NCBI GenBank assembly: GCA_000708835.1
Contig: DF237220.1
Location: forward strand, 1-64,000
Reading direction: 5' to 3'
Length of the DNA stretch: 64,000 nucleotides
From: Klebsormidium nitens
Lineage: Eukaryota; Plantae; Klebsormidiophyceae
Shown here: in pieces, positions 1-33,650 of the stretch
Layout: each line of letters begins with the position of its first letter
Numbering within the stretch: the first letter of the stretch is position 1
Notes under the pieces: model-generated
What the model was told of the DNA's origin: nothing
Database searches by the model: none
What the model saw: the letters and a program-made list of their open reading frames with translations, nothing else
Program-made: the position numbers and the translations under genes

Positions 1-393
1 TAAAACACAAAACAAATAAAAAAAAAAAAAAAAGTGTGCCTTTGCATAGCGTATGCTCTAGGCGGGCAGGTTATGATCTGCTTTACAAAGGCCTTATATG
101 CCGCTGGGCATGCTTGCTTGTGGGTTGACTGCAACGAGAACCGTCGATATACAAATATCGAGTGCTGAGAGCTGCTCAAGCCCGAACAATTGCACGCACA
201 CTTTTGCTGGTTGGACCAGGTCGACACCACCGGCGTTGGCAATGGCAAAGAGGGAGGGAGCAAAGACATGATCCTGAGCAGCAAAATGGTCGATACAATC
301 CCTTCAGGGCAACATTCATGAGTGGTTGTTGGAAAAGCTAGAGGTGCGCCAGTGGGCGGGCCTCACTTGTACTTGAAAGTGACGAGAAGCAGC

Positions 394-4494: not shown

Positions 4495-4720
4495 TCTTCG
4501 GATTGCAATTTGCCTCCATGCCCGGCCGGCAACACAAGTGTGAGAACTGTGCTTTAAATCAGGCGATCTGTTTCTTATGTTACTTGGTCGTTCCCCTCCA
4601 GCACATACAACCTAAGAAACATTGCCTGGCAGGCAGTAGACAGCACCTGGTCTATTTCACAATTCTCTATTTTGATCGACTGTTGCTTCGTCGAAACACA
4701 TGGGCAACTTATTTGAGATA

Positions 4721-5770
4721 CTAACTAGCTTCTGCATGCTAGCGAGGGGAAAATATGAATACTTCATCGCGTGTGATCATCTTCTCTTGCGGGACCTGTG
4801 AGTACGCGCGGCGCGCGGCAGCTATGTATTTGAGAAACATTGTTGGGCCGGACGGCCTAGAAAAGTATCAACGTACTAACATATTTGCAGATACCAACGA
4901 TCAATTAAGTTCCGAGTCATACGCGTGATGGTGAATTCTTACATATGCAAGACAGTGCCAGACGGTGTGCATGGTACATAGATATGCATTCGCAGTACGC
5001 GCGTTGCCAAGTTCGGGCAAAGTTTCAAATGTATCGTTAGCTAGTATACAAGGCGGCCGCGGCCGCCCCGCCCGGTAATACTGAATAAGTGGCTGCATGT
5101 GGCGCGCGCGGCGATGCCACACTGATGCATGCGGCAATGATCTGATGCAGAATGAACATAAGCGCCAATTGTGTAAATCTCTTTTACGTACATACTATAC
5201 CTATATACTATGCACAATTTTTGTATATGCTAGCTGTACCTAAAACTATGGCGGCAATTCATGACTGTTATACTCCCGATCAGATCGATCGTTGCCCGTG
5301 CGGATCAACAATTGATATCCGCACGATCTTATCGATCCGCAATCAAGTTGAAGACGCATTGCCAGGTTTGAGAAGCTTAGATTCAATCATGTTTGCAGCT
5401 AGCTACTCAGTATAGGCTAGCTAGACTTGCGTGTGCAGTTATAAGGAAAGGTTCAAGAGGAATGCTGAGACGGTCACATCGTAATTGTACTTGAATGCGG
5501 CCGGCCGCTTCTCCTCGCATGGCCGCGCATGGCGGCACGAACTTCGGATTTCCTCGATATCATCATCATTTGCATATAATTGGACTAAGAGGCGGGCCCG
5601 ACGGTGGTCAATACATCGAGCTATCCTTTCCAAGGCTGTCAGTATTCTCAGTTGCAGTGATCATATGCAACCGCGGTGCGCGGCGCCATGCACATGTACC
5701 ATCATGATCACAACAACAACAGACTGAGATCTACATGTTTAGCCGGGTGCCAAAAGCTCGCTGTATACAC
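4721..5770. other. Palindrome-rich convergent spacer 1
   Basis: Hand count of about 53 perfect hexamer palindromes in ~1.05 kb, versus about 16 expected at random. Includes GGCGGCCGCGGCCGCC (5052-5067) and GCGGCCGGCCGC (5497-5508). Confidence 0.8.
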
Positions 5771-5811
5771 GTTGCATGGACAACACATCATTGTTATACG
5801 GAACACCCATT

Positions 5812-8800
5812 TTAAACTGTTAGGTCATGGTCCACTTTGCTGCCCAACATTGCACTTGAGAGCCACCGCCGAGCTGAAGAACTTGTGATTGTGTCTTGTG
5901 CGCCCCGGAAGGACGTGAGCCCTTCGAAGCTCGCAGCCTCGTCGAGATGCCTGAAGAGATCTGCCTCAGCACCGGCGCGCTGTGGAGTTCTGTGGTCGCC
6001 TGCAACACTGGGGCCGTCTGGAGAGGCAGCAAAGCTGGGCGATGAGCAGACCCCGCTGGTTTCTCCCCTCGCAATCGCGTTTCTCCCGCCTGGAAAATCT
6101 TGTCTTGACGTGTGGGGGGACGCGTCCTGGGGTGGAGACGGCGAGCTCCCTTTCCCGTTTGCTTGCACGGTCGCTCTCGCACTGTTTTGCAGCTCCCGAA
6201 CGTCCGCTCCACAACGCTGAGCGGCCTCTCCCAACCCGTTGAGGCACGCGGGTCGGGCGACCGGCCGTGAGGGCCCTCTCTCCGCCGCGTACCCCGGGTG
6301 GAGCCTCTGCCGCACGAGCTTCATGGCAATCTCCGCGTCGTGCACGCGGTCGTCCGCCGCGAGGGCCACGTCGCGGCCGCTGACCACGCCCCGTGACCGC
6401 TCAGCCACGTGGGCATGGCGCGCTGCCTTGAGCTCCTCCTCCACGGCCGCCTTCTCCGCCTTCACCTTGCTCACCTGCACCCACCACATGTGCGCTCAGA
6501 TGCAAAGCGGACGCAACACGTACGAAAAAACAGCAAAGCACGGCCACGAGGAAAATACCGCAGGCATGATGCTGCCCCACGCTGTGGGTGAAGCGATCTT
6601 CGACTGCCGCTGATGTCATGGAGGCCTTGGTATCTCAGTCCTGCATGGCCTGAGCCCTGCTGCGCACCGTCGCAGGGCTGCTATCCGCCGCGCTCACCTC
6701 GTGCAGCAGGTGGTTGACCATGTTCATGAGGTCCATCTTCTCGGCCGGGATGCGGGCCCCGCCGCGCGGCTGCCGCACCAGGAACTTCTGGCTCAGCTTC
6801 AGCGTCTCCAGCTCGCTGCGCGTGGCCGCCGCCTCCTTCTTGTGCGCTGCCAGCTGCGCCACCACCTGCGCACGCAGCCCGCTCTCCTCCTCCAGCGTGC
6901 CCGCCAGCCGCGCGTTCGCGCCCTCCAGCGCCGCCAGCCGCTCCGCCGTCGCAGCCAGCTGCCTCTGCACGGCCGCCACCGCCCCCGCCTCCCCCGCCTC
7001 CCCGCGCTCGTACGCAGCCAGGCGGCCCCGCAGCTGCGCCACCTCGTTGCCGTACAGCTCCTGCACCACGCACCACGCACCGCAACAACGTCAGCGCTTG
7101 GGGACATTGCGGACTCCACTTGAGACCAACGAGGTGGCTTTTCAGATATGGGCGAACTTAAATAATCCTAGCATTCGGAGTTCAGCCGCAATCGTCAAGA
7201 GAACACAATCAGTCCACCACTTGCCAAGACCAACCGGAAAGGCCAGTCTCATGCCACGTTCTGAAGATAGCCGACTTCTGAAAACGACAAGGTGTGCCCC
7301 GCATGCGGCCATCAACTCTGCACCAACAGAGGGAGTAACTGGCCGGAAGTTGCTTCCAAAAGCGCACAGTCCTTGGGTCGTCAACGCTCGTCAAGCAGCC
7401 AGTCAGGCTCTTGCTCCCGAGCCGAGCCCCTCAAAGCCGCGTAGAACCATCCGAGCAGCTACTGGAGCTACTTGATCTCACCAAGCCGAGCACCCCTTCC
7501 CGTTCTCCGGCCTCACCTGCAGGGCGTGCATCTCAGCGCGCAGCTGCCCCCTCTCCTGCTGAGCGCCTTGCTCCTTGTCGCGCAGCTCCGTGGTGGTGTC
7601 GTGCGCCTGTCCGCGCAGCGCGGCCACCTCCGCGCGCAGGGCCTGCGCCTCGGCCTTAAGCTTGCCGCGGATGAGCACCAGCGTGTCGCTCTTGGCGTCC
7701 ACCATCATGCGCAGCAGGGCCAGCCCGCGGGCCAGCCTCGCCACCTGCATGCCCCAGGCAGCACGCTCACCAGCAGCTCACCGCACAGCGAGGCTGACTC
7801 TGGGCAACCACGGGATCCACAGACACTGATCATGCCAGGGACAAGACGAGGTCACACTCGATTGCGCACTTTATATATGACAAGCAGTGAATAACACCCT
7901 TCTTATCATCTGATAAACAATCTTAGCTTCTCCGCTGTCAAAGACGAGTTTTCCAGTGTTTGTATGTCTTAACGCCTCCCTGTGAGTTGAATCGAGGTTG
8001 CGATGCTGCTCAATGTGAGGCCCCGCCCCCATGGCTTACCTGCTTCCCCAGGCCATGCTTGTCCCCTTCCAGGGGCGCCTTCTCCTCTAGCCCGCCCAGC
8101 GCCTCCGGGGGCACCTTGAACGTGGGCAGCACTGCCTGCTGGAAGGCCTCCACCCCGCTGGCCATCTCCGCCACTGCGCCCGCCGCCGAAGTCACTACTG
8201 CCTCCAGCCTGCGCAGCGCAGCCGCTCCCTGCTGCTCCGCCTCAGTCGAGCTGCAAAAGAAGCAGACACAGTTAACGGGTGAGGGGGCACCTCGAATTTT
8301 CAGTGGCCGCAATGTCTTGTGGAGGGCTATGAATCAAACAGTGCATGGTGAGGTGAGGACAGCTTGTTTGCGCCGGCACGTCCCCATTCCCTGTGCAGCG
8401 CTCACCTGTGTGCATGTTCCTGCAGTGTGTGCTCCAGGCGCTCCCTCTCCGCAGCCTCCCTGTGTAGCTCCTCCTGAGCCGCCTCCAGCGCCGCGAGCAG
8501 CTGCTCCCTCTCGCACTCATACCCCGCCGTCTGCTCGGCCACCCTGGCGCTGATGTCATCATCGCGGTGCTGACGCAGGCGGGCCAGCTCGGCCCGGTGC
8601 TGGCGCTCCTGCGCGCTCACGTCGCGCAGCTGGCCACGCAGCAGCTCGTTCTCATTGCGGAGGGACTGCGCCACCACCGCCTGCTCCACTGCGGCAGGGG
8701 GCCCGCCAAACTGCTGCCTACTCAGCGGCCGCTCAGGCGGAGAAAATGCCGGGTACATTGTGCTGACCATGCCCTTGACCGCTTCTGCGTGGCTGGGGCT

Positions 8801-9474
8801 GCCAGCCAGCTCGGAGGTGATGGGAGAGCGGTTCACAAGGGCACTCTTAATGGGGGACTGGAACACCGAGGGCTTCCTACTTTCGGGAGACGAGTCGGGG
8901 CTGCTGCGACCCCTGGGAGAAGCGGGGGACCCTAGGGGTGTTGCCCACATTGCTGGCTTCATTTGCGGCCCTGGCTTGCTCACAGACTCGATGGTCCTTC
9001 AAGTGAACGGCCCCAGAAACCCTTCTTGTCTCCCCGGTATGCCCCTCTCTCAATCTCATGCAGGGAGCGCCTCTTGCACAAAACCCCAGGATCTTGAGAC
9101 CTCTACAACAAAGTCAGTATTGCCGGAGGGCGCCTATGGACTCTGATTTTCCACCAGGATAGGCAATAAACAAACAACCTACGCATCCGAGTAGAGAGCT
9201 TGAACCCCTGATTTTCCAAGATACCCCTGACCTTTAGGACTCCCAGCAGATCCTCTGCCCAGCACTACTTTGCAGGTTCAACGTGCAACTTCTCATCTTC
9301 TTGGTAGACGAAAGGTTCTTGCTTAGCATGCTGCACGGCTTTCTGCAACACAGATTCCCTTGCTTGTACACTTCGACCTCCATCCAGAAACAACATGACC
9401 GGCACCTCTGCACGGAACTTCTGCATCCTGAGGAGATCTAGGGCCCCAAGCGCCGACTCAGGCTCGTTGTGCAT
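5812..9474 (-). CDS. Orphan coiled-coil protein, at least 5 exons; 5' end uncertain (ATG near 8962, or an upstream exon 9474-9268)
   Basis: In-phase GT-AG exon chain on the minus strand: ~8983-8394, 8252-8041, 7747-7517, 7063-6669, 6477-5812. Exons are A/E/L/R/Q-rich and heptad-like after a Ser/Pro-rich N-terminal part. No family motif recognised. Confidence 0.65.
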
Positions 9475-9941
9475 GACTCAATCTCCGGCCCAGGCTTCCT
9501 CGGGACCAGGGATGAAACTGGGACTCAAGGTGCTGTGTCCTAGCCAGAGCCACAGCAGCCGCCCACGCCGGCAGTACCGTATTCCCAACGCTGTGATTCC
9601 AGAACTTTAACCTATCCCAAACCGTCCATTGTGGTCCTTTTCTCTCATTTGACGGCCAGATTCGCAGTATTCTATTAATGCGCGAGCTAACCTACGTTCA
9701 GCCGACCTCACGTGAACCTGCAATCGCAATGAACTCTGTTTGGAGTATGTATGGCCCCTACCGGCATACCGTATTACAGTAGGTAGGGTCCTATGTGACG
9801 ACTTCCTGCTATCTCGACTTTTACTTTTAGCGAAGAAGCTACTAAGACGGTTCGCGCATTCGGCCAAGCTAGGGCGGTCAAGCTCGTGTTGAGGTCATCA
9901 GCAGGAGGGGTCGTTCGGTTCCTTTCAAGAAGCCCGCCGCC

Positions 9942-17082: not shown

Positions 17083-20000
17083 TTAGTTGGTTTCGCCGAT
17101 GCACTGTTTCACAAGCGTCATCAGGCAGCTGCCAGGAAATCTGCCCAGCGAACCCCGTGCAGCGGCAACTTCGCTGAAGGTCCTGACTGCGTCTCCGCTC
17201 GGCGGGCCGTCGCCCACGTCCGCCTCTTGCTCCACGCTGGCTGGGGCCGACGTGGTCTGCTCGACAGTGGCGGCGCGCGGCAGGGGAAACGGCGCCATGT
17301 CCACTGACACCACCCGTGCTTCGCCCCTGCAAAGGGAAGTGGCACACAACATTACAGTCGGGCGAAGTCAGGATTGACCTCGAGTATGGAGCCGTCGTTC
17401 AACTGACCTGTGCTTTTGAGCGGACACGGGGATGCTGAGCACGAGTGAGATTCAGGAACGCGTCCACATCCACAAGCATCACCTGAACAGCCGGCTGGAG
17501 GTAGTGCTCGTCAGCAGACCATTCTCCTTGTGACCAGCGCCCTTTGGAAACACATTCGCTTCACAAGTTGAGCCCTGAGAATGGCTCAAGATACGCGCCG
17601 TCCGGTCCGCAGCGCTGCGGATCATCCCGACAGATTGACTAAGTCTGCGTGAAAGGATTTACCCCATCGCGGGCTGCTTTCCGTACAGACCCGCTGAACT
17701 TCTGAGGGGCAGAAACCTGCGGGTATCTCGATGCATCACCATGTTCCCACGTTCGTTCTGAGCGATGACCAAGCGGATTCGCGTGCGAGCACGGCGCCTC
17801 GTTGACACTCGTGCCCTGTTGCCGGGCCCACCAGGGCTGCCTGTGGCCGCACCTGCGCGCAACGAAGTCCGCGAGCGCGCACGCTGTGAGCGGCACCGGC
17901 TCATGGCTGTGGTCGCCGTAGTCGACGGGCGTGCTGTGGTCCCCGGTCACGAGCAGCGTGTAGCGCGGCCCGCCCGCCGCCTGCGCGGCCCACAGGCGCG
18001 CCGCCAGCTGGCCCACCATGGCGTCCACGGCCTCCAGCAGCGCCACCTTGAGCCCGCCCGCGCGGTCGTGGCCCGCGTCGTCCACCGCCTGCGCGGACCA
18101 AGGCACTGCTGCCACCGAGCGGGGGCGAGGGGCGCACGCACCCTGCTGCTCCGTGAATGTTCTCCCACCCTTAAATGCTTGAAACAAGGAGACAAGCAGA
18201 TAACACCAATGGGCTTCTAGATTTTGCTGAACGGTCTACCCCTCTAGCGTTCGTCAATTTCAGCATGAAGTAGCGCATCAGATGCTGAAACTTCGCTGAT
18301 GCTTTCGTGGCCGCCTAAGTAGGATTGGAATCTGATCTCGTGGCAAGACGGAAGCGCTTCTAGGCCTGCCGAAGCTCCCGTTGCAAGGCACGTGATTCTG
18401 CTCTACAGAGACGCCTCCTCATGTCCAAATAATCCAGATTATTTATGTCTCCTGAGCCAATTCACGCCGCCGGGTGCTCTCTGCGTGGGTGCGTCACCTT
18501 GATGTGCAGGAAGCCGAAGTCGTAGCCGGCGGCCTGGCCGGACGGCTGGCTGCCCTCCACTCCGGGCACCTGCACCCGCGGCAGCGGCGCGGCAGGCGCC
18601 GCAAGCGCAGCGGCAATGGCGGCGGCCTTGGAAGTCAGCTGCGTGCGGTAGTCGCCCGTCGCACCTGGGGGCGGCAACGTGCAGAATCACGGCCGGGCGG
18701 CGGAGGGCCGCGCTCGGAGCAAGAACCGGGCAGGTCTTACGACTCAGCGTAGAGAGGCCGGTGGCAATAATACAGCTCACAACGAGGCTGAACCGACGCA
18801 GTGTACAAGTGACAAAGGATGGAACCCAAGATAACAAAAGTAGAAGCCAAGCAGGACGAGGTACGTATCGCCCGGCGACTTTCCGATTGAGGTTCCACAC
18901 AGTGGACATGGTCAGATGTTCCCGTGTGCCCACCTGGCGCCTCGAGGATGTCCATGCCGAGGGAGAGGCCCAGCCCCGCGATGATCTTGGTGGGCGCCAC
19001 CATGCACGGCACTACGCCCGCCTGCGCCGCCAGCGACGGCACCTGCAACACCGCGCACGCAGCCGTCAGAGCGGGGGAGAAGCACGCAGAAGAGCCGCTG
19101 GAGGGAGGCCGCGCGGAGTGAAAGCAAGCGAAACGGTCCAAGGCCCAGCTTTGGGCGATGAAGATAAGGGAGAGACAGGGTTGAACCAATCACTCGTCCT
19201 CCAAGCAGCTGAGCCCGTTGGGTTTGCCGCCAAGCTTCATGGACTGCCTGTATGACCACGTGCTTGCTGCACTCTGCGGCCTCCGTCTGCAGGGCAGTTC
19301 CAGCGCCTAGCTGGTTCTTTGCGATAGCGGGTGAGAGCAACAGGCTCATCATATTGCCGTCTTCCCCTGCGGCGCACCTGTATCCTGATGCCGCACCCGC
19401 GCAGCAGGACCACGTTGGCCGGGTTCTTGCCCTCCGCAACGCGCTGCGCGTTGATCGGGTGCCCCCGCAGGATGGCGCGAAATGCATCCGACACCGCATT
19501 CACAACCTGCACGCGAGCCCGCACTGCACCAGGTGAGGGTCAGCGATCTGCGCAGAGGCAAGCTGGGGAGGTGCACGAACACACAGGTGCACGAGATGGC
19601 TGTCATTGGGACAGGCAACTGGTAGACACGTCGAAAGTCGCTGTACTTCTTACTCGCTTTATAATAAGGACGAATCTCTTCTCTCTATAGTGCAGGATGG
19701 CAAGCAACCCTGAAAGCAGTGACTTTGATCGCGAAACACTCCAGACCCGCCAGCCTCGTCACCGGCAGACTTTGCAGAGGTCTGACCACCAGCAGGTCCC
19801 GCCAACGTGCGGCAGAACACAGGCAAGCGCCAAAACCTGTAACACCCACACTACCCAGAGACATGGCAACTTTGTACGTGGATTCGTCCTTGCAGTTCTG
19901 TGGAGACATTTCGGAATGATATGAAGCCCCAGCTCCACGAACAAACGTATGAGCAATCTTTACGGGTTTCCCACACAATCCTGCCGGCTTCCAATACTTG

Positions 20001-21762
20001 TTCGGGAGCTGACGAAAAGAGCCATCGCTCCCTCTACTTGATCCTGCAGACTGAGCGCCCCAAGCTATGCTGAAAGAGCCAGTATTTACGCTCCAATCCG
20101 GCTTGCACTCGATAGGCTCTCAACAGATAGAAAGGTTACTAACAAAAGACACCCCGAACAATAGTGAGACGAGGCAGTGTGTCCGAACAGATCACTCCGC
20201 CAGCTTGGACACATGTCGGAGGTAAACCACCATAATCTGTATTGAAACTCTGCAACGAGATGAGCCTTCTATGAGGTCGAGAAACCTTTCAAGGATCCTC
20301 AATTCAGCCCTGCCGGCCGAATTCCAAAATAAAAACTCAAGTTACAAAGTACATGACCATCTGGACATGGATACCCGCCTCATCATTCTCACAGGCCGAG
20401 TCATGCACGCCTCGCCTCACCCGTGCGGTGTGCTCGGCTTCGGGTGTGCCGTCCAGCCCCTCCACTGTGCGCAGCGGCAGGTTGTCCTTGAGAGGGTCCG
20501 TCCCGGAGATGTTGCCGCTCAGGCCGGGCCCCCGCACGACCACGCCGCAGCGGTGCTCCGTGGCGTAGCGCACGTTGACCTGGTAGTCGGGGAAGGCGTG
20601 CAGGCGGCACCCGTCCAGCGCAGCGCACAGCACGGGGCCCAGCGCCTCAAAGTGGCGGTCCGCGCGCCGCGACGTCACAATGCCGCTCTCCTCGTCCACC
20701 GTTGCGAAGTTGCTCTGCAAAGGGGGAATGGGGCGCGCAACATCGTGAAATAGAGGCAGGGGAGCCTGTAAACGAGCAGGAGGATACTCCATTTCGCTTC
20801 GCGCAGACAATGATGAAAGAAACTGATATGAACGGAGGTATTCCTTGTAAGGGCCTGGAAATGTACTCTGAAGGAATCAAAACCTAGTGAAGGGGTGCAA
20901 TTCAATGAACTGGAGGGTCGTAGTGGGGCCAAAGAGCAATTTTGGTACCTTATTGTTGCAATCATGAGATGGCATGCCATCCAACCTGTCAAAAAGGGGC
21001 GGAACTGTATGCACGTCTGATGCAAGGGTGCCCCCTGTCAACTAATAACGAACTCCGCCTGTGTCCAGTCTGCGTCAGCCACCGGGTGGGGCGTTGTTGC
21101 TGGGGCTGGGCGTACTTTGAACGCGATGTCCCCCGGCGCCATGGGCAGGCCCGCCCCCATGGACTCAAACGCGCCGCGGCCTCGGTAGTAGACGCGCGGG
21201 TTGTAGCCCAGCAGGGAGAGGTGCGCGGTGTCGCTGCCGCAGGCCAGCCCCGGCTCCACCGGGTCCATGAGCCCATTCACACCAGCGGCTGCCAGTGCGT
21301 CCAGGTTGGGCAGGCGAGCAGCCTGCGCACAGACGCGGCGCCCTGTGAGACACTCACTCGCTGGACCAGTCAGCAGCTCAGACTGGCCCGTCTGCTCTGT
21401 CAATGCAGGTTACGGGCCCGGCAAGCGAAGTACACAACGCTGTCAGTCTGAAAAAAGACTCGCTAGAGCGCAAGCACTGCAAGGAGACAGAATGAGAGGA
21501 TGTCTGACACCATAAGCGATTCCTTTTATCCCTGCCTTGGGCAAAGCCTGAGGGACCCTTCGATGACCATAAAGGCAGCGGGCAATTTATGGCTGGCCCA
21601 CAGCTTGGCATGTGTTCAGCTTCGTGCAGGAAAGAGCGGCGCCCTTGGTGATACCCCTCCACTGCTGCTCACCTCCAGTGGGGTCCTGAACCCCAGCGAT
21701 GGCAGAGCCAGATCGCCAATCCCATCCACCAACACCAAGGCCACACGGTGCGCGCTGGGCAT
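17083..21762 (-). CDS. apgM: 2,3-bisphosphoglycerate-independent phosphoglycerate mutase, apgM/alkaline-phosphatase superfamily (plant At4g09520/At3g30841-type), 8 exons
   Basis: MPSAHRVALVLVDGIGD, GLMDPVEPGLACGSDTAHLSLLGY, RYATEHRCGVV, LSGNISGTDP, NVVLLRGCG, APTKIIAGLG, FLHIK|AVDDAGHD, VTGDHSTP, HSHEPVP and GSLGRFPG. The metal ligands and catalytic Ser appear intact. Confidence 0.93.
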
Positions 21763-22626
21763 CCTCCCAGCAAGCGCCACCGCCGCTAGCTCCGGGCTGG
21801 TGTTGATGGTCTGGATGCCCAGCGCAGAGCACGAGCGGAGTGGACCCAGCCGGCTTCCTGGCAGTGGCAGAGGTCGTGATGTGGGGTATGGCAGCTCGTC
21901 AAGCTCGTCAAGCTCGGCAACTGACTAATGCTAGCAATGCCACAGGGTACATTGGGAGTGCTAGCGGAAGGACAAACCCTAGACTCAGAGTTGCTGTGTG
22001 ACCCGAGACGAGCCACTCTTGTTCAACCTGACCCCGCCACAAAAATGTTAATAAGCTTGAAGAGCCGGTTCTCGTGTCCGCCCACTTTGCCGTTTCCCGG
22101 TACAACGGATGCAAACCCTGCGAAATGTTTTCGTGTTGACCGGGTGCGTATCAACAACCGGCAGCTGAGTTGACGGCTCAGTCTCGTATTATAACATACA
22201 CAGATCGATGGACATAGGACCTAGGTTTAAGCTGACGATAACTATCCAAACCCAGCTTCCACTTCTGTCCAGCTATAGATAATAATTTATATACTAATAA
22301 AATAGAGCATTGTTCGGCGGTCTGCAGCTCAACCGTCTTCCCCACACGGCACCGTCCAACCTTCGCCTTGAAGCGTTCACTCTTGTGGGCTAGGGCAACA
22401 GTGAACCCTGTACAGTGTAAGTCCTTGAAGTTCAGCCTACAGGCCAGCTCAGAACTGATTGCCCCGGAGGATTCAGAAGATGCGCAGCACCACTATGCTT
22501 GGCTGCTCTGATGGAGCCTACCTTAGGCGCACTAACGATGCACAACTGTCGGTATAGACTGGAGGCGTGTCCGCGAGGGACCTGTAGAAGGGTGCATTGA
22601 TTGACACACATTGGCGGGGCTCCAGC

Positions 22627-25600
22627 ATGCCCGGTGCGAACAGCGTCATCGAGATCACTGAGCTGCCCTTGCCCCTCCCCCGCCCCCTCAGCCCAGCACG
22701 CAGCGCGCCCGCCAAGCGATGGCCCCGTCTCCTGGGCTTGCTCTTCTTGGCGTTTGCAGCGTTTGCACTCATCACCACCGGCGCCAGCACCGCCGCAGTG
22801 CACTACGGAGTGGATGTCAATGATCTGGGCAAGAGACAGATCCTGCCAGGCCTGCTCAGGGCGCTCTTCATTGACGGCTGCCTCTTGTCAGCAGCAGGTT
22901 GCAGGGCAGACAACCGGGACAGGCGACCACAGTCCAGCGGAATCACGGAGGGGACAGAGCAGGCCGCGCAGCTGGCCAGCGCCCTCAAGTTTAAGCCCAA
23001 GGAGGTCCCTGGCGTACACGAGGAAGCGGCAGCTGACCAGGTGCTGAAGGAGCTCAGCGGAGCAGAAGCCAGTCAGGTGTGGCACACAATGAACGACACG
23101 CAGCTGTTTGCCGCTGCGCTGGCAGCTGCAGAGGGGGCAGCCGAGCCTGCTGCCGGGGCTGCCAAGGTGGCCTTCATGTTCCTGACCAGGGGGGAGCTGC
23201 CGCTGGCGCCACTCTGGACCCGCTTCCTCAGAGTAAGTGCAGCCAGTGGCGCTTATCATGGTGTCCAACAGGGGTTCTGCATCTATGGAGTCAGGCGGTG
23301 GCACCCATGTGAGTCTTCTGTGCTCCCAAGAAGAAGTACAAAGTGAAATCCTGCTGAAATTGGCCAGAAAACCAATCAGTTGGTGAGCTGCAAACACAGA
23401 GTACATTATCTACATCGGAGGTCGCCTTGTGTTCACAGGGGAAGGAAGGGCGGTACTCCATCTACGTGCATGCGCACCCTGACTACACTTTCGGTGTTGG
23501 CCCCGACCTGTTCCGCAAGGGGCGCATCCCCAGCCAGCCGGTGAGCCAGCATGCCCTCAGGCCTGCCCACCCGTACCCACCCTGCTCTGCACCCTTGTTC
23601 GTGGTGACTGCAATGGTAGTGCCGGTGTAGAGCAAAAGTCATTGGCACGTCTACAAAGGGTCTGGTCAGCTGCCTGTGTACGCTCCGGCCCGCATCTTTT
23701 GTTTTGCTGTGCGCAGGTGAGCTGGGGCAGCATGGCCATGGTGGACGCGGAGCGGCGGCTGCTGGCCAACGCACTGCTGGACCGCGCCAACGCCGCCTTC
23801 ATCCTGCTCTCCGAGTCATGCGCGCCCATCGCCGCCTTTGATGACATCTATACCTACCTCACCAGCACGCATCTCAGCTTCATTGAAGCGTGAGCATCCC
23901 CAGTGCTCCTCGCTCAACAGTTCTTACCTGTTATTTCTGCTTGCCCTTTGATGTTGCCTCGATATTGCCCATAAACCTCAAGAACGGACTCTTCTGCTCC
24001 AGCATGATTCTTGCTGAGGAGCTGTAGCGCTTTCTAGGTTGTTCATCTCTATAACTTGTGCATACACCCGATGGAATCTGGAGCAGGACTTTTCAAAAGT
24101 TATGGCCATCTTTCCTACTCGTGTTGCTGTTCACCTGTACCCATTGGCAGGCCTGTCCCCATACACCCGCAGGTTCGACGACCCGAGCCCGCAGGCGCGT
24201 GGCCGTTACCACCCCGGCATGCAGCCAGAGATCAGCATGGAGCAGTGGCGCAAGGGGCGCCAGGTCAGCACACGCGCACCGCCCGCGCCTCAGTCTAGGC
24301 TCTCTCAGGCTCGGCGGTGCACCCAAGTGCCTGCTTCCGTTCTTAACGGCGAAAAACGACGAGGAGATGGACATGAGAGTGGGCTTGCCGTCTAGCTCGA
24401 TCTTCGAAGTGGGTCATCCTCTCGAAGCTGAGTTTGATGGCCGAGTGCCATCCGTGCAGCCCGCTGAAGCGTGTCCCTTGATGTTGGCAGTGGTTTGAGG
24501 TGACGCGGGAGCATGCTGCGGCCATCGTTGGCGACACGGTGTACTACCCCAAGTTCCGGGACTTCTGCACGGTGAGCCCCCGCATCAAGTCTCGTCCTCC
24601 TGAGAAGGACGTCAGGGAGAGAGCACGCTCTTCCGGTGCACAGCTCGTGTGAATGGACATTCTCTGGGCAGAAGGGTGGGGACAGTGGCTCACATTCTCA
24701 TGCAATAATACAAGTGTGACATCGTCCCCTGCCTTTTGATTGTGTGGTGCTTTCGATTACCGTCTATTGCTGTGTTGCCAAGTCGGCTGGAGCCGTAATC
24801 TCGCCTTCCTGTTTTTATCCAGGGCGACCGCAACTGTTACTCTGATGAGCACTACATACAAACGCTTGCTTACGTGAGGTCCTTACTCTTTGCTCCGTCG
24901 TTATCTTCAAAGTCCACCCGCGGCGCCAGTCCCACTTGCACGTCACGTGTCTCTTTCAGGGCGATGCCGAGCACCAGTTCTGCTATCCTGACGAGCACTA
25001 CTTGCAGACGTTCGCCTACGTGAGTCTAGACACTGCTAGCCCGCCTGCCGCCCTCACGCCCCCATCTCACTCCCACTGTCTGCATAGTCTGCGATAAGCG
25101 GCTTGTTGCCGCTGCTCTTCGTGTGCTGGCTGTTGCTGGGGCTCTGGTGCCACGTCAGATACTCCCACGTCTCCGCATGCCTGTATCGATACGGTGCCCT
25201 GATCGTTTGAGAGCTCGCTGAGCCTGCGGTGTGCTGCGCGGCTGCCAGATCACGCTGCGGCACGAGATAGCCAACCGCAGCCTGACGTACGTTGACTGGT
25301 CGCGCGGGGGCTGGCACCCCGCCACCTTCGGCTTCTGGGAGGCCACCGAGGAATGGCTCCGCGCGATCAAGGTCAGCCCAGCCACTGCCACACTGTTGCC
25401 GGACACGAGGAGGAGCACACCACGGACTGACGCTGGTATCGCCGATGTGATTCCCAATCACCGGCTTTGTGTGGCCCTGTCCGCAACCTTGTTCAGAAGT
25501 TGGCTTGTTACAATTGCCACAGCTCTTGAATGTTATTTTGGGATTTATGTGCCGAAGGAACAACCTCTGTGCGGTTTGACTGATGCTGGTGTCGGTGGTG

Positions 25601-25732
25601 TGGGTGCAGGCTCGAGGGGAGTGCGACTGGAGTGGGCGACCGGGGCAATGCTTCTTGTTTGTTAGGAAGGTCGACCGCACCGCGCTCAGACCCTTGATGC
25701 AGATGAGCGATGATGTGCTTGGCTATCGATAA
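22627..25732 (+). CDS. Core-2/I-branching beta-1,6-GlcNAc transferase-like (GT14-like/DUF266, BC10 family) type II membrane glycosyltransferase
   Basis: N-terminal TM helix (LLGLLFLAFAAFALI), then KVAFMFLTRG, YSIYVH, VSWG...DAERRLLANALLD, FILLSESC, WRKGRQ|WFEV, CYxDEHY, NRSLTYVDWSRGGWHPATF and CFLFVRK. The last exon is 25610-25732. Confidence 0.92.
24823..24873 (+). other. Alternative exon 6A of the GT14-like gene (GDRNCYSDEHYIQTLAY)
   Basis: 51 nt, phase 0/0, flanked by ttttatccAG and GTgagg. Homologous to exon 6B. Confidence 0.75.
24960..25019 (+). other. Alternative exon 6B of the GT14-like gene (GDAEHQFCYPDEHYLQTFAY)
   Basis: 60 nt, phase 0/0, flanked by ctctttcAG and GTgagt. Confidence 0.8.
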
Positions 25733-26122
25733 CCCCCGTTGCTTGGGTTCGCATCTGTCCTCTTTTAAATGCAACTTCTGATTTTGACACACTGCAATTC
25801 TCATCAGTGGATTCGTGGATCATCTTTAGTACTTTCTCGCCGTTGCTTCTCCTTTTTTCTCCCCCAATGCTTCCTCTGGGCTCGGAATTTGTACGTCGCA
25901 TTGCTCGTGCATTGCTCAGTTCATTGGCTCCTTTCAGGCCCCAATGTGCCATACATAAGCTTAATTTTGGCGTCGCATTTGCAAATTCGTCCAATTCGTG
26001 GGTCCCAGCTAGCCATACCAGTGTCGTGCCGTGATGAGTCGAGGCTGTGCCGTGTCGGGTGCGCTCAACATATGCAGTCGAAGCGAAAAAGCATGACATC
26101 CGTTCTACGGACGTCTACAGCA

Positions 26123-26159
26123 CACCTTGTGGTCGAGGGTTCGAGCCCCTCCTCCGGCG
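26123..26159 (+). pseudogene. 3' half of a tRNA-like sequence (Lys/Asn-like); 5' half absent
   Basis: CACCTTGTGGTCGAGGGTTCGAGCCCCTCCTCCGGCG. It has a perfect T-arm (GAGGG/CCCTC with TTCGAGC loop), variable loop TGGTC, an acceptor 3' strand, and TTTT about 10 nt downstream. It closely resembles the 3' half of plant tRNA-Lys(CTT) as I recall it. No D-arm or anticodon was found. Confidence 0.5.
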
Positions 26160-26219
26160 GATTTATGCTTTTCCCATTCGATCCAGATCCGGTGCTGTCC
26201 CACGTGCAGCTAGCTGCCG

Positions 26220-27060
26220 CCACATATTAGACCTAGCTCAACATCACGGTCGCCTACGTATATTGCACGCCTGGCCGGCCTACTAATTTGTGCAGCGACG
26301 GTATAGCATGCAGGCTAGTCGGGCTTGATTTCTGTGGTGTCGGAAGCCTGCTCATTGTATCAGACCGGCCGGCATGAAACGCGTGGCGTCATGTATAAAT
26401 TGTACAATGAAATATGAATTGTACGTATAAATCTTGCTCAGTCCGACTCCTCTGTGTTCGAGATCTCCTAGCTCTCAGTACGTCCAGCTTGGCAAATCGC
26501 AATCTCCGATATATATGCGAAGGAGACTCGAGAACATCATCCTATGATAGCAGATTAGTAGATTAGCAGATACATATATAAAGCTAGGTTAGAGAGCTCC
26601 CCGGCCGGCGAGCGCACAGCGTTCGTACGTCATATCATGCAGTAGCTTCCCTCAGACCCGGCCCGGCCCGGTATAGTAGAAGGGTACCGTACGGCCGCAT
26701 TCAAGAAGGAAAACAGGCCGATCGAACCGAGGGCAACGACAAGTTAGTGACACGTGCACTGGCAGTGCACATCATGTTCGTTTATGTATGCCATGAGAAG
26801 GCCCGCGATGGCCCAGCCTGGTGGCCGGTCGGCTATGGCGTTCAAAAGAGATACAGGCTTATGTAAGTAATTTAATTTAGGCTCGCCGAATAATTCAAAC
26901 GACAATCTAAATAAGATGCTGCTGCCATGGCCAGCCGGCCACCTGCAGCCTGTAGCTTATGGCAGTCCATCGTACGTCATTATGGCATCAGGAGATCGTT
27001 GTTCAATTGGTGCTTAGAAAAGAGGCCCGTACCAGAAAGCATTGACGCGTAGCTCACAGA
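26220..27060. other. Palindrome-rich convergent spacer 3
   Basis: GGCCGGCC, CCGGCCGG, CGTACG, GTGCAC, AGATCT, GGTACC and TATATA clusters. Assessed by eye. Confidence 0.7.
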
Positions 27061-27174
27061 GGTTAAGTGCTGTTATCACTGACGGTGGCGAGCTTTGATG
27101 AAAAGACGAGCAATCTGCATGAATCAGGTCGTTGCCGTTAAAGCATCGCTGACCATCGATCTGAACTGCCACGT

Positions 27175-29574
27175 TCAGCGATTGCGCCTCGAACTCTCTG
27201 ACACGTCTTTTCTGCCTTTACCAGGACCTTCCTCGCCGTGACTCCTGTCATAGTCCCGCCGTTCTTTTCCGTGCCCGCTGCGCCCATTCCGCTCTCTGTC
27301 CGGACTGTCTCGGCTGTATCTCCTGTTCGTGCTGTCCCTTCCGCTGCTCCTCTCGTGGTCCACGCCAGTGCTCTCGCTTGGCCTGTCATCACGCCCCCTC
27401 CTATTCCCCTCGCCAGCCTGTCTCTGGCTCCGGCCGTCACCCTCCCGGTCTGCCTTGCTGGTTTGCTGTCTTCCCCGCTCCCTGTCTCCAGCCCTTGCGC
27501 TGTTCATCTCCTCCCCACGTGGACCAGCGCCCGTGTTTTCCTCTGCAGCATGCCTCTCCCTGTCCCCCCGGTGCCTCTTTGGCGAGCGCCCCCGGTCGTC
27601 CTCCCGCCCCCCTGCTCCGTCTCCCCTTCGCTTCTCATGCCGATGTCCTTCCCCGTCCTTTTGCCCCTTGTCCTCCTTTCTCGATCTTTTCACGTCTACA
27701 TTATCTGCCAGCATAGAGAACAGCCCCCCTTCCCAAGGCAAGGCCGCCCCTCCTCCCCCCGTTCTCATACGCGGGGCTTCCTCCTGCGGTGTGCCCCCCG
27801 GTGGGGCCCGCGGAGGCCCCATGCTCCCCTTCATAGGAGGTGCCTCGTCCTTTCGAAACCCATACCCTGGCGTCTGGCCGTTCTCCGCCCTTGGCGCATT
27901 ACCCGGATGCTTGTCGCTGCGCCAAGTCGACTTCGACTCCAGCTCTTCCTTGGGTCCCCACGTCTTGGAATTTCGCTGCACCAGGACACAGAGCCTTTGG
28001 TTCCTCGGACTTGGTGACCTTCCCCACAATGAGCACCCTTGAAAGAGCAGGAAAATGGAAGATCGAACAGGTTTTGTCATCCTCACTGGCTCTTCTCAAT
28101 CTCGAGATCCTTGGCATCCTTGAGGGAGCCAGGGCCAGCTTTATCCGCAGCCGCTGCTATGTGCGCAGTACAATCCGCTTGACGAGCACAGGAACAACGG
28201 CGCAGGCTGCCTGACCACGGTGCGTCACCTGTTCGTCATGCGAGAAGCGGCAGGCGCTGCCGCGGGTGCACTCGCCCCTCTGGAACGCATAGCACACCTG
28301 GAGGAAGCAAGGGAAGTCGCGTTAGCATGTATGCACTCTTGACTTGACCAACCAGATACAAAAATGGACATCATTGGCACAAGGTATGAGCAACGAGTGC
28401 AGCAAATGTTTGGATACAATTTGATGGCTTCATGTTTTGAAAAGTCTGGCAGAGGTTGTTCCGAACAAGTCGAAACAACTGAACAAGCACATAAGTGAAG
28501 GACTTTCTGAACTTCAAACATCAGTTTTGACCAATCCATGCCATGTCAGCAACCTGTCAAGATCAGACTATCAAATTTTATAAAGAGATACTAGCACAGC
28601 ATGAACTCATCCCCAATGAAAAAAAACAACTTCCGCTCCCTACATCTCGAAGAGATTGGCTGCTTGTTTACCATTACTTAAAAGGCATCAGCTGTTGTCC
28701 AACACTTGATCAGTTGACAAGCATAGCTCACCCCCCTCTCCTCCCGCGCCGCGTTCCTCTCGTCCTCGTCCTCCTCCTTCTTGCGCTTGTAGTTTGCGAC
28801 GTGGTCCACGCGCACGATGCGCCCCGCCACACGTGCTCCATTCAGGTTGTCTGCACGCACCGCATCAACCAGTGACGCGATTGGAGGGCAGTGGCCAGAA
28901 ATGCAGCAGCCAATAGACACTTGGCCAGTTGAAGAACCAAAGCAAAGGCAGCGTAGTTTTGAAGTTGCAACTGAAACTGAAAGGTTGAGAAGATCCTCAT
29001 GAACAACAGTGCCAGAGGGCGTCTGCAGAGTGTGCCAGCGGGTGGACATAGCTTGATGAAGGAGGGATGACAGGCAGACCAACCTACAGCCAGCACCGTG
29101 CTCCGCTGATCCTCGTATGCAAGAAAGGCAAAACCTTTGGACTTGCCGGAGTCCAAATCACGAACAAGGTTGACATCCATGATCTCCCCATACCTGCACA
29201 TGTGAAACAGTACACAAGTGCGTTTGCTTCGGTCAGAGATTCCGCAGCTTTTGTGGGGGCTCGAGTGGACCGGTAGTACACCCCGCGGGGTACCCTCATT
29301 TTCCAAGGCTGCACGACGCAGTTTCCGCTAACGCAAGAAAAACCCAGGGGGCGAGACAGTCTGCAGCTTAAGGACGGCTTGGAGAAGAAGTGTCCACTCA
29401 CTGTGCGAAGACGGCTAAGAGGTCCCCCTCCGTTAACTCATAGCCCAGACCTCCGGCGAACACATACGCTGAGTCCTTATACTTGGCATGCCAGGACGCA
29501 TTGTCAGACAGGCCTGCGGCGACTTCCTGGGCACTGATTTTCTGGGTGTTCTTTATCTGGGTCAACGGATTCAT
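27175..29574 (-). CDS. RBMX2: RBMX2/IST3(SNU17)-like RES-complex splicing factor: RRM + CCCH zinc finger + charged tail, 5 exons
   Basis: MNPLTQIKNTQK...SWHAKYKDSAYVFAGGLGYELTEGDLLAVFAQ|YGEIMDVNLVRD...GKSKGFAFLAYEDQRSTVLAV|DNLNG...RVDHV. The CCCH finger is VCYAFQRGECTRGSACRFSH. Confidence 0.94.
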
Positions 29575-30208
29575 GTTTGGGTCTGCATAAATCAAACTAG
29601 TGCTTCTCGAGAGATAAACCACACTGGCACTTTTGACGGGCTGCTTGTCGTCCTTGAAAAGATCCTAATCCTCAGTTGATGTATCCGAAGAGCCAGTCCT
29701 TTATGATCGGGTTCTGTCAACAATGACAAGGAGCTTTAGTTGCTTCGTAGAAACTTGAGGATTACTATGGAAACAAACGAACTTCAACTCTGTAGCCGTG
29801 ATCTGTCCAGTCAGCAACCTTCTTGAAGAAAAAGCTTCACCCTCAAGCGTCGTTGTAAACTTAAATACCAATAATCTGCCAGCACCCGCACTGGTCTGGC
29901 GTGTGAGTAGGGGTGAGGAACACTGGCAGTACGAAAGCTCTGCTCAGCTGTGGCAAACGGCGCACGAGCTGCCTTTGAAAGCGCTGCCAACCATTGGCAT
30001 TGGCATCATGGTGCTCTAGTTAACAATATTGAAATGAGCTAGAGAAGATGCATGTGGCTGCTACCTGCATATGCCCCATGGTGCCTACTGGGTACCTGGT
30101 TTAGAGTGTCGGTTAGCTCTTACCCTAGAGGAAACCGTTTCGGATGTTCCGGAACCCCGTAAGTCTGAACTCTACAATCTTGTTCTGAGAGACTGGGACA
30201 GGCTTTAA

Positions 30209-30371
30209 CCTACCGTATTTACTAACCATATACAGCTTCTTCCGAGCAACCTGCTAGTTTTAGTGTCATCTAATCTAGACTAATTTCACTCACAAACAGA
30301 CCGACTAAGTTACACTTATATTTTCACTAAAACTAGCAGGTTGCTCGGAACTAGCTGTATCCTACCGTAGG
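30209..30371. mobile_element. 163-bp fold-back MITE-like element flanked by TTAA (piggyBac-type signature)
   Basis: TTAA at 30205-30208 and 30372-30375. Termini are CCTACCGTA and TACCGTAGG (one mismatch). A perfect 26-bp inverted repeat spans 30240-30265 and 30325-30350, and TACAGCT/AGCTGTA also pairs. Confidence 0.65.
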
Positions 30372-31293
30372 TTAAGAATTAGAAAATTTAACGAGCCCTT
30401 GCAGGTGCCAGTGGTTCCATGCAAATTCACATTTGCATGATTTGGCAAGCCAAGTTCTGGCTTTCGCTCAGGCCCTGGCCCTGGGCCCGGGGCCTTTCAA
30501 GTTTCAGTTCCACTGTTCCAGAATCAAATGCTTTCAAATGCTGAAGTTGGAAGCAGTGCACAGGTATAACCCGTCTGAGCAGCTTGGCAGCTTGCTGATG
30601 CAGCAGGATGGCGCACTCAGCAATGCATACCTTGTCCGGAGCAGGGCAGCTGGTGACCACTACTCATCGCTGGGGGGCATTGCAAAGTGGCTTCACTGGC
30701 AGTGAGAGGCTTGGAGGTAAGAAAGCCTCAGCTCGAGAAAAATTCTGCTCGCTCGCCACGTCGACCAACTATGAGAGCGGCTAGTCTTCAATGGACTGCC
30801 AGTAGCTTTCAGAGGACACATTTGTTCGATCCTAGCACCTTTTCACCGTGTGTGAGCCCCTCAGGCCAGACTGCATGCAAGCAGACTGCCAGGGGTAAGC
30901 TGTATTGCATTCAACTGCCTTTGTCTCGCCAGGCATATCGACAACTTGCCCATTCAATCCTTTCACCGGCAGAATCATGCCATCATTTGAGCATGTGCCG
31001 CTTCAATTGTGGCCTACTTAGAGGAGTGCCTACTTAGAGGAGTGGTCCACTTAGAGGATGTTAGTTCTGAGGGGCCAGTGTGATGGGCTTAATTCAATTG
31101 CAGAGTTGAGCCGGGGCAGGACTGGCCCCAGGTCTTTGAAAAGGCTTACACCCTTGTATCAATGAAGCATGGTCTTTCTGTAAATGAGCTGCATCAGAGT
31201 CTTCCCATAGGGGGTCAAGGTGTGCAATGCTGCCACTAGATGAACTTGAGAAGGTTCTTTTGTTAGTTGATTGACTTTTGGAGATGTCCATGA

Positions 31294-32933
31294 TTGGTGA
31301 GCCGTCCCCTGCAAGGTACACCATTCCTCTGCCGGACACAGAGACGAAGCTTGTCACGGGCCAGGCATTGGTTTCCTTGTCGGGCGTCTGCTTCGGAAGT
31401 GGAGCATGGTGCCCTCCCGGTGGGGCGGCGACTAGTGTCGACCGGAGCGCTTTTTGCAGCCCTGGCAGGTAAACACCCCTGTTGGTGCAAGCATTCCATA
31501 ACGTTAGCGGGCGCCTATGCAACTAGGCCATCTACAAGCGCCTGTTCTGTTTGTGCATGTGGAGGTGCCCCGCTGCCATCCTTTCTGACCGCGGCGAGTT
31601 ACTTATCTACGATGTCGGCTGCCAGGTGCATCTATTGGGGCCCAGCCCGCATCAGCAGCATCTAGAGCCAGGGCCGCGGTGAGCATTGGTCACTAACCGA
31701 GAAAGTTCAAGTGCTCTCAGAATGTGGGCCTGTCAGTGAAGGAGTTGAGGGCATACAAAGCAGGACCTTCCATGTGCCAGCCACTGGTTTTAAAGGTAGT
31801 ACAAGGTGTTGTCTTCATCATCCAATCAAGACTGATTACTGCAGGTCTGTTTACAACATGCTATTTCTGACAGGCCATACTTGAAGTGGTTGTATGTATG
31901 TGTCTTTTTATATGTTTGAATTCAAGTATACCTGTGTTTGCAGAGAAACGTCAAAGTGCCCGAGGACCAGTATACAACTCTCCCAAATGGCTTGAAGTGA
32001 GGTGTTCTTTGTCTCCGTTTCTGCTTTCTTCATTCTCTGAGTAGGACTATAGAACTTCTGTCAAGAACCGTTAGGCCTGGCTTTGACCAAAGATTCGAGT
32101 GTGCTTCCTAGGGAGGTTCTATTTCCGCGGCACTTTAGCAAGCTCTCTTGGTTTAGTTTTGGCAAGTGTAATAGTTTATTGGAGGTCTGTGTTCCGCACA
32201 GTCTATCGGTCGGCTTGGTGGCGAATGTAAGCCTTCTGGACATTCCTTGCAGAATTTTTGATGTAACGGTCGGTTCTGGAGCAACCGCAACGAAGGGAGA
32301 ACGGGTGGCAGTGCACTACGATGTCAAGTGGAAGGGGGTCACCTTTTCAACGAGCCGCATGGGGCAGGGAGTAACAGGTGGCACGCCTTATGGGTTTGAC
32401 GTAGGGGCTTCTGAAACCGGACTGGTGTTGAAAGGTCTAGACTACGGGGTTGAAGGTATGCGAGTTGGAGGTCAGAGGAAGCTCCTCATCCCCCCAGAGT
32501 TGGCATATGGCAAGAGAGGAGTCCAAGAGATTCCACCTGATGCAACCTTGGAGGTTGACGTTGAGTTGCTGAGCATCAAGAAGAACGCCTTTGGGTGAGT
32601 AACTCGGTTCCTCCTTGTTTTTTGGATCCTCTGCACTTGCAAGGCTCGAGACATCTATTCGACTAGCTATAAATGCTCCGGATTCAGCCCTTGGCATCAT
32701 ACAACATCTTCAATCCATTTATGACTCCTAGGATGGTTTTGTTGACGTTCAACATCTTTATGATTCTGTTGTTTGAGAATCTTGATGTTACCATAAGTTC
32801 TCAAACTTTTCCAGGTTTTGCCCATTGGTGACAAATAGAGATTCGGTTATCGAGCCTTTTCTTGAAAATTGCATTTCTTGAGCTTTTAAGTTTTGCCACA
32901 TGCAGGACGCAAGTGAAACTTGTGGAAGGGTAG
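31294..32933 (+). CDS. FKBP16-4: Thylakoid-lumen FKBP-type peptidyl-prolyl isomerase FKBP16-4; start codon not resolved
   Basis: Transit-like region with a twin-Arg motif (GRRLVSTGALFAALA). Then RNVKVPEDQYTTLPNGLK|IFDVTVGSG...VAVHY...TPYGFDVG...VLKGLDYGVEGMRVGGQR...PPELAYGKRGVQEIPPDATL and terminal GTQVKLVEG* (exon 32906-32933). Confidence 0.9.
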
Positions 32934-33650
32934 GCGAAACAGTTCTTATGCGGGACTGAGTCATTGTGCAAGGGTTGCCATAAAAGGTTCCTGCTGCTCC
33001 AGATGTACATCCAACCCAAACAAAACCTTGAGATGTTGCCTTTGAAAGCGTCGTTGTTTTGGTGTTCCAAAAAATCTACAGTTTGAAACCATTCCGAATC
33101 TTGTTACTCCTCTTTATATCACCCTATCAAGCTTGAAGGGGAGCTTGATGAGTCGTGGAACTTCATGCGTATGCCAATATGCGGCTTTGGATGCTAGCCA
33201 ACCCCTCACAGGTGATCTTCTCATGACATGTACCGGCCGGTGGTTGAAGTCGAAGGTTTCGCACATGTTCACATGTGCCATTTGGTGATCGTGTTGCCTA
33301 ATGGATGTTATATCATGTTACTCTGTGCACGTTGCAAGATGTCGTAATCAAAATTCATGAGCATTGTAATGTGTAGCGTCGTGCTGGCCTAACGTCATGC
33401 CAAGAAGTGAACTATTTATCTGCATAAGCAAATCGTGCACCCTCGCGGCCACGATGATCTCTTTTCGTACTCGACGATGCGGCCCCCGCCTTCTCGAGTG
33501 GAATGTCGGGTGGCCGCCATGAATCTTGGTAGCCAAAGTCTGAGTCGATCGTCGATTTAAGGAGACCCTCATCCGACGGCCCAGGCGGAATCTACTACCC
33601 GGTATCACTTGATTGCAGCATCGACCGTCCACATACTTCTCGGTTTCTGG

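Follow-up and report, generated by a model that had tools for sequence, protein, structure and literature searches.

The stretch of the Klebsormidium nitens genome analysed here, 64,000 nucleotides of contig DF237220.1 (assembly GCA_000708835.1, positions 1 to 64,000) and referred to below as the window, carries at 22627-25732 of the forward strand a gene for a predicted BC10-like glycosyltransferase in which the exon for the putative catalytic loop is present twice. The two copies, exon 6A (24823-24873) and exon 6B (24960-25019), lie in tandem between a common exon 5 that ends at 24571 ahead of GTGAGC and a common exon 7 that begins at 25249. RNA contigs connect either one or the other of them to these neighbours, and both are conserved in a related alga. 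We consider, with a probability of about 0.82, that 6A and 6B form a real, selected, mutually exclusive pair of homologous exons. The pair had been proposed from the sequence of the window, and the exon and intron coordinates given in this original prediction, the 0/0 phase of both exons, their lack of stop codons, the 86-nt intron between them and its sole YTNAY motif (CTTAC, 24882-24886) were all found to be exact.

Exon 6A consists of 51 nt (17 codons) and encodes the peptide GDRNCYSDEHYIQTLAY with the motif YSDEHYIQTL, in which the two cysteines that frame the loop are separated by five residues. Exon 6B consists of 60 nt (20 codons) and encodes GDAEHQFCYPDEHYLQTFAY with the motif YPDEHYLQTF and an eight-residue spacer. 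Both twins are on the plus strand and preceded by CAG; the donor sequence is GTGAGG for 6A and GTGAGT for 6B. Only 6B is annotated. The aligned twins are identical at 12 of 17 residues, all family-invariant ones included, and at 36 of 51 nucleotides, and the two peptides coincide in their columns of the family alignment as well as in their Pfam positions. Judged from these alignments, the likeness of the twins exceeds chance. No similarity above that of shuffled controls was found between the intron flanks of 6A and those of 6B. The third-position GC content (GC3) is 0.85 in 6B and 0.59 in 6A, the latter clearly below that of the other exons (0.68-0.93) with the exception of exon 8. The tandem layout is not an assembly artefact, since 24844-24988 is covered without mismatch by one unspliced contig of an independent run and the same layout is present in a second species.

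Evidence for use of the exons comes from public RNA data. Twenty public runs hold 24-67% of the words sampled from the gene, which is close to its exon fraction. Contigs of four runs from four different studies (X1, X5, X7 and X13) were placed on 22400-26000. They are spliced at every predicted GT..AG border and thus derive from RNA. The two joints that include exon 6A (24571 to 24823 and 24873 to 25249) were present in all four runs, and the two joints that include exon 6B (24571 to 24960 and 25019 to 25249) in three of them (X5, X7 and X13). Neither a joint from 6A to 6B (24873 to 24960) nor a joint that skips both twins (24571 to 25249) was present in the contigs of the four runs. At the level of contig junctions, the mutual exclusion that had been predicted is therefore borne out.

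Contig depths agree with this picture. In run X1 the upstream and downstream joints of 6A had depths of 105 and 123 and those of 6B were both 0, at a constitutive depth of 113. In X5 the values were 36.3 and 36.3 for 6A and 19.6 and 19 for 6B, with 57-61 for constitutive parts; in X7, 14.1 and 14.1 for 6A and 37.8 and 37.8 for 6B (constitutive 30-43); and in X13, 7.5 and 7.4 for 6A and 6.3 and 5 for 6B (constitutive 17-23). The depths of A and B together come close to the constitutive depth in the four runs, which leaves little room for further forms. The equal depths on both sides of each twin in X5 and X7 indicate single contigs that run from exon 5 through 6A to exon 7 or from exon 5 through 6B to exon 7. 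The share of 6A varies from about 27% in X7 to about 100% in X1, and from such strong differences in ratio between data sets the choice between A and B looks regulated.

Conservation of both twins in a related alga

A search with a fragment of the protein led to an 85-residue Logan protein (P0415) and from there to the 11-kb contig that encodes it (L002, run SRR23617307). L002 carries the orthologous locus of a related alga in conserved synteny, with 79% identity over the whole gene. Its positions 215-9874 are collinear with 22466-32938 of the window, a stretch of about 10.5 kb with at least four genes, at 70-88% identity. Genes in the part of the window that L002 covers, and for which it can serve as a comparator, are located at 27170-28300, 28711-29591, 30576-31832 and 32233-32646, the last encoding an FKBP.

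In this comparison the introns are 59-80% identical and contain insertions and deletions, whereas the constitutive exons are 88-96% identical. Exon 6A is identical at 50 of 51 nt (98.0%) and exon 6B at 59 of 60 nt (98.3%), which makes them the two best-conserved exons of the gene. Their counterparts are found at 2555-2605 (A) and 2706-2765 (B) of L002, and all four splice sites are kept. At the intron rate, the probability of finding no more than one change in 51 nt is 4e-7. The original prediction had pictured, as the outcome that would speak against it, a decaying exon 6A that orthologues lack; instead, both twins are retained at 98% and 6A shows no synonymous change.

The sole change in each twin replaces an amino acid in the variable loop, N to H in A and F to Y in B. 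Accordingly, none of the 37 twin codons has a synonymous change, as compared to 30 of 229 codons (13%) in exons 2-5, 7 and 8 (Fisher p=0.012). Such conservation of silent sites is typical for regulated alternative exons. It points to a constraint at the RNA level in addition to that on the coding sequence, for example by enhancers or silencers of splicing. By the measure of this comparison both twins are under strong purifying selection, silent sites included, and neither is decaying. The twins themselves are much further apart than the two species: in K. nitens, six codons of the 17 differ synonymously between 6A and 6B and five differ non-synonymously. In view of this codon divergence and of the loss of all similarity in the flanks, the age of the duplication is several times that of the split between the species. 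Scans of metagenomes, both at the protein level and with a 26-nt core of exon 6A, gave no match, and there was no full-length 6A isoform among the matches in the protein collection searched.

Enforcement of the either-or choice

Since 51 and 60 are both multiples of three, transcripts with A spliced to B or with both twins skipped keep the frame, and neither the frame nor nonsense-mediated decay (NMD) can police them. Exclusivity can therefore not rest on NMD of spliced A+B transcripts. Retention of the 86-nt intron between the twins (24874-24959), on the other hand, shifts the frame and leads to a stop at 25021-25023. Removal of this middle intron as such was never seen. At 86 nt in K. nitens and 100 nt in L002 it is by a wide margin the shortest intron of either locus; in K. 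nitens the remaining seven measure 176-283 nt. Its 3' 45 nt are about 91% conserved between the two species and its 5' part about 60%. Run X13 has just one intronic contig in this region, that of the unspliced middle intron (24844-24988, depth 4.3), with both flanking introns at depth 0. No intron statistics are given in the main text of the genome paper for K. nitens.

In our view the pair goes back to an old tandem duplication of the exon that encodes the catalytic (S/P)DE loop together with the initial turns of the helix behind it, and each mature mRNA takes either 6A or 6B. For the enforcement of this choice, the properties of the middle intron suggest the following scenario. When both twins are recognised, the middle intron of 86-100 nt would be spliced poorly or not at all, so that it would be retained, the frame shifted and the RNA non-productive. 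The retained intron in X13 would be the expected product, as transcripts in which both twins were recognised could not remove it. Exclusivity would then be imposed at splicing by a short middle intron that is poorly or never spliced, the exact cause being its size, the position of its branch point or factors bound to it. We propose this tentatively and rate it at somewhat less than even odds. A wider interpretation is that by switching between 6A and 6B in a regulated manner, a wall glycosyltransferase has its acceptor or active-site loop re-tuned according to conditions, that this is one instance of a genome-wide programme of homologous either-or exons of the animal type in Klebsormidium, and that the choice is enforced by an intrinsically unspliceable short intron rather than by NMD or RNA pairing. 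Taken as a whole this is unlikely. If it were true, a layer of proteome control acting directly on enzymes of wall biosynthesis would have been in place in algal relatives of land plants.

Several points count against the reading of 6A and 6B as a regulated, exclusive pair enforced in this way. The RNA evidence consists of assembled contigs and not of raw reads, and since rare variants are dropped from contigs, low levels of A+B or double-skip forms could be present. The contig depths are rough, and the sides of the contigs that carry the joints are short at 24-28 nt, which is expected for bubbles at k=31 but lies under the minimum of 30-31 nt preferred for the tool. Regulation is suggested by differences between studies, the metadata of the runs being coded, and the evidence for selection comes from one related species. 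The retained middle intron was seen in a single run and at low depth. A crude, conservation-based survey of neighbouring genes gave three intron candidates, of 121, 208 and 432 nt. With respect to the function of the isoforms, the switch of glycan specificity put forward in the original prediction is conjecture, since enzymatic activity has yet to be established for BC10/DUF266 proteins in general (PMC3355507).

Of the alternatives, a steric model survives best. It holds that the acceptor of 6B uses the motif CTTAC as its branch point, with the A at 24885 only 11 nt from the donor of 6A, so that splicing from A to B is blocked. The example for this type of enforcement is exons 2 and 3 of alpha-tropomyosin, where Smith and Nadal-Ginard are said to have mapped, in 1989, a branch point 41 nt from the upstream donor. 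No YTNAY other than CTTAC occurs in the 86-nt intron. A CTNAC pattern is found at the same offset in L002, as CTGAC, and the middle intron of L002 is free of AG from the donor region up to the acceptor, which would be compatible with a distant branch point. However, the motif has no predictive value for this gene, as intron 2-3 lacks YTNAY altogether and yet is spliced in all four runs. In K. nitens CTTAC is separated from the acceptor of 6B by a stretch with two AGs, one of which forms a CAG, and with a distant branch point these would normally serve as acceptors. The middle intron is best conserved at its 3' end and not around CTTAC, a pattern of four bases would survive by chance in roughly a quarter of cases at a per-site identity of about 70%, and a 14-nt insertion in L002 adds a TTTTAAC some 45 nt away from the donor. 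The branch-point argument of the original prediction turned out to be uninformative, and we regard the steric model as improbable.

A second possibility is that exclusivity arises from competing RNA pairing, with a docking site and selector sequences as in Dscam or 14-3-3xi, or from hairpins that enclose the exons. A consensus fold of the two species with RNAalifold contains a helix of 10 bp (24742-24751 with 25146-25155) that has two compensatory and two one-sided changes, and short stems by which the two ends of each twin would be juxtaposed. The complete lack of synonymous change in both twins also fits some constraint on the RNA. The folding z-score is, however, +3.3 for the whole 717-nt region and between 0.0 and +1.3 for each twin with its flanks and the middle intron in both species, so that no thermodynamic signal is present. 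Covariation derived from two sequences has almost no power. Furthermore, the 10-bp helix would connect the two outer introns, one upstream of 6A and one downstream of 6B, and would loop out both twins, favouring the double skip that was not seen. Pairing is therefore still less probable than the steric model.

The remaining alternatives deny the pair itself. If 6A and 6B were independent cassettes, exclusivity would be only apparent, with A+B and skipped forms lost from the contigs. Such forms would be in frame and escape NMD, and rare variants are indeed lost from contigs. At the A shares of about 50-65% in X13 and X5, however, independence predicts about 23-25% of A+B transcripts and equally many double skips. 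Neither joint is present, although the same runs report contigs at depths of 3-7, and in every run the two depths add up to nearly the constitutive value. This makes independent cassettes very unlikely. The view that one twin, most likely the unannotated and AT-richer 6A, is a decaying duplicate included by splicing noise can draw on its absence from public annotation, its unusually low GC3 and a rare-looking ATA codon, but is effectively refuted by 6A being the major or only form in X1 and the equal or major form in X5 and X13, by its near-identity with L002 where introns have diverged by about 30%, and by its conserved splice sites and full set of invariant residues.

The encoded enzyme and its active-site loop

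The gene corresponds to KFL_002710050, a hypothetical protein of Klebsormidium nitens (P0171, 452 amino acids). P0171 is identical to the translation of exons 1-5, 6B, 7 and 8, whereas exon 6A is absent from the public model. The two predicted enzymes have 449 (6A) and 452 residues (6B) and are otherwise identical. A search with full-length P0171 gave no close relative besides P0171 itself, the best of the other matches being about 50% identical. The next-best full-length relatives are land-plant proteins annotated as glycosyltransferase BC10-like, with about 45-53% identity.

All exons are on the plus strand. Exon 1 (22627-23232) contains the start codon and encodes the cytoplasmic tail, a hydrophobic anchor, the stem and the start of the Branch domain; it matches residues 1-202 of P0171 at 100% and is joined to exon 2 (23232 to 23439) in all four runs. 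Exon 2 (23439-23540), whose joints were also found in four of four runs, has no amino-acid change in L002. Exon 3 (23717-23889) ends two bases into a codon and exon 4 occupies 24173-24263; RNA joints were found for both. Exon 5 (24491-24571) ends with the invariant Cys350 (...FRDFCT), and its donor is joined in RNA contigs to 24823 or to 24960. The intron between exon 5 and 6A (24572-24822, 251 nt, 72% identity with L002) is spliced out in the joints from 5 to A, and the intron between 6B and exon 7 (25020-25248, 229 nt) in those from B to 7. Exon 7 (25249-25371), which encodes the invariant D387, H394 and P395, is joined at its acceptor from 24873 or from 25019. Exon 8 (25610-25732) corresponds to the C-terminus of P0171 and includes the stop codon TAA at 25730-25732; its joint (25371 to 25610) was found in four of four runs.

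When the exons were examined one by one with hmmscan, collinear matches to the Pfam Branch profile (PF02485, 250 positions) were obtained: positions 1-22 in exon 1, 65-123 in exon 3 (E=1.5e-16), 125-166 in exon 4, 167-192 in exon 5, 193-205 in exon 6B and 213-249 in exon 7. An AlphaFold2 (AF2) model of the 6B form has a mean predicted local distance difference test score (pLDDT) of 80, with values above 90 through the catalytic domain. Foldseek searches with this model gave E values of about 1e-10 to the structures 6EJ9, 3OTK and 2GAK. Superposition with VIA-align gave Z scores of 20.3-21.3 to the two GT14 folds that have been solved, those of human XylT1 and mouse C2GnT-L (rmsd, root-mean-square deviation, 2.8-3.5 over 245-258 residues), as compared to at most 13.8 for other GT-A enzymes. 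Sequence searches of PDB chains, with the single protein and with a profile of 34 sequences, yielded only spurious matches, namely a designed repeat protein and CusF. A hydrophobic run is present at about residues 34-52 in exon 1, and the AF2 model has a single long helix at 34-60 followed by a low-confidence stem. The predicted layout is that of a type II membrane protein with a short N-terminal tail, one anchor and a stem. By sequence and modelled fold, the gene product is thus a predicted Golgi-type, BC10-like (formerly DUF266) member of the GT14/Branch group with a GT-A fold of the GT14 kind.

In an alignment with 34 relatives, C350, C359, D362, E363, H364 and Y365 (P0171 numbering) are invariant. 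The D362-E363 pair occurs in 34 of 34 relatives and lies in the sequence YSDE in 6A and YPDE in 6B. Both twins keep C359, Y360, D362, E363, H364, Y365 and T368, so that each encodes the invariant C-Y-x-D-E-H-Y..T segment with the putative catalytic glutamate. In C2GnT-L, Glu320 of the SPDE motif is the probable catalytic base and contacts O4 and O6 of the acceptor (PMC4202792), and this glutamate is conserved among DUF266 proteins (PMC3355507). The literature equates the (S/P)DE motif with Glu320 (PMC4202792, PMC3355507), in line with the earlier suggestion that the DE of the twins matches the glutamate of the Core-2 enzymes. On the basis of the motif, its position in the profile and these papers, E363 is the putative equivalent of Glu320.

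The differences between the two isoforms are located around this residue. The position that precedes the Asp-Glu pair is Ser in 6A and Pro in 6B, and two residues of the following helix differ, being Ile and Leu in 6A and Leu and Phe in 6B. AF2 modelled the 6B form with a somewhat lower pLDDT of 84 in the loop block 351-360, and with the helix at residues 361-373. The spacer between the two cysteines varies as well. Among the relatives it has three residues in 299 of 343 motif instances and eight in 12 of 343. Two streptophyte proteins, P0142 and P0042, share with 6B both the eight-residue spacer and a 'GD'. The two isoenzymes may differ in how they handle the acceptor, which is plausible, or in how stable their active-site loop is and how it responds to redox conditions; we rate such a difference at somewhat less than even odds.

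Comparison with known systems

Homologous either-or exons are a known kind of arrangement, and the pair in an internal catalytic loop of a GT14 enzyme is what the K. nitens gene adds to it. In animals, pairs that alter the active-site loop of an enzyme occur commonly; from the green lineage few have been documented. A green-algal example of either-or exons is Volvox carteri cyn23, whose exons 4 and 5 are mutually exclusive as verified by reverse-transcription polymerase chain reaction (PMC4378016). As in K. nitens, adjacent homologous exons of a green-lineage alga are included one at a time, the isoforms differ at few residues and the use of the exons is verified by RNA. However, V. carteri is a chlorophyte and K. 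nitens a streptophyte, and cyn23 encodes a cyclophilin. Moreover, the cyn23 exons are equal in length at 106 nt, which is not a multiple of three, and their double inclusion breaks the frame, whereas the K. nitens twins of 51 and 60 nt remain in frame. FLM/MAF1 of Arabidopsis (PMC3266260), the standard example from plants, is likewise an either-or pair of the plant lineage, and the FLM proteins are functionally distinct; there the I-domain of a MADS transcription factor of a flowering plant is affected, and here an enzyme active site. The K. nitens twins also resemble exons 2 and 3 of alpha-tropomyosin as adjacent exclusive exons that are never joined, with the difference that the sequence evidence for the branch point is equivocal here.

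Within the GT14 group, human GCNT2, the I-branching enzyme, is produced as three isoenzymes from the alternative first coding exons 1A, 1B and 1C (PMC5147899). It shares with the K. nitens gene the GT14/Branch family and the use of alternative exons at one locus to encode part of the catalytic domain. The GCNT2 alternatives are first exons, presumably chosen by promoters, that encode most of the domain, while the K. nitens twins are internal, chosen by the spliceosome and encode a loop of 17-20 residues. GCNT2 also belongs to an animal subfamily with known beta1,6-GlcNAc transferase activity, whereas the K. nitens gene is BC10-like. In view of GCNT2, the original remark that no such case was known for the family was too broad; it stands for an internal pair in the catalytic loop, of which no report for a GT14 or BC10-like gene was found in the literature searched. 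That literature contained no report of an alternative catalytic exon in BC10-like/DUF266 genes either, and no paper on alternative splicing of KFL_002710050 in Klebsormidium.

The nearest system by sequence is rice BRITTLE CULM 10 with the plant DUF266 proteins (PMC3355507), which have the type II layout, the Branch domain and the motif with the putative catalytic Glu in common with the K. nitens protein. Most plant BC10-like proteins have a three-residue spacer between the cysteines, as opposed to five and eight residues in the K. nitens twins.

The BC10-like family is tied to the biology of the cell wall and of arabinogalactan proteins, and K. nitens, an alga close to land plants, is used as a model of how plants came to colonise land. 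Two natural isoforms that differ by a swapped loop could help to find the acceptor of BC10-like enzymes. The pair also offers a clean case for studying how spliceosomes of the plant lineage enforce an either-or choice. For annotation, the consequence is that the public gene model misses a form that is dominant in some data sets.

Some minor observations concern the surroundings of the gene and the family. Downstream of the gene, at 26130-26165, lies a GGTTCGAGCCCC motif that resembles a tRNA T-arm; ARAGORN detected no tRNA over 20000-30000. Many of the top matches to the protein (P0001, P0003 and P0005 of Closterium, P0002 of Lupinus, and P0151-P0157 of land plants) contain two to four Branch stretches in 466-1155 amino acids. 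These predicted multi-Branch proteins may be annotated fusions of tandem genes or real multi-domain proteins. A passage in PMC5364563 states that DUF266 proteins occur in land plants only. Clear BC10-like proteins are present in K. nitens, Chara braunii and several Closterium, and since these algae carry clear members, the BC10-like family predates land plants.

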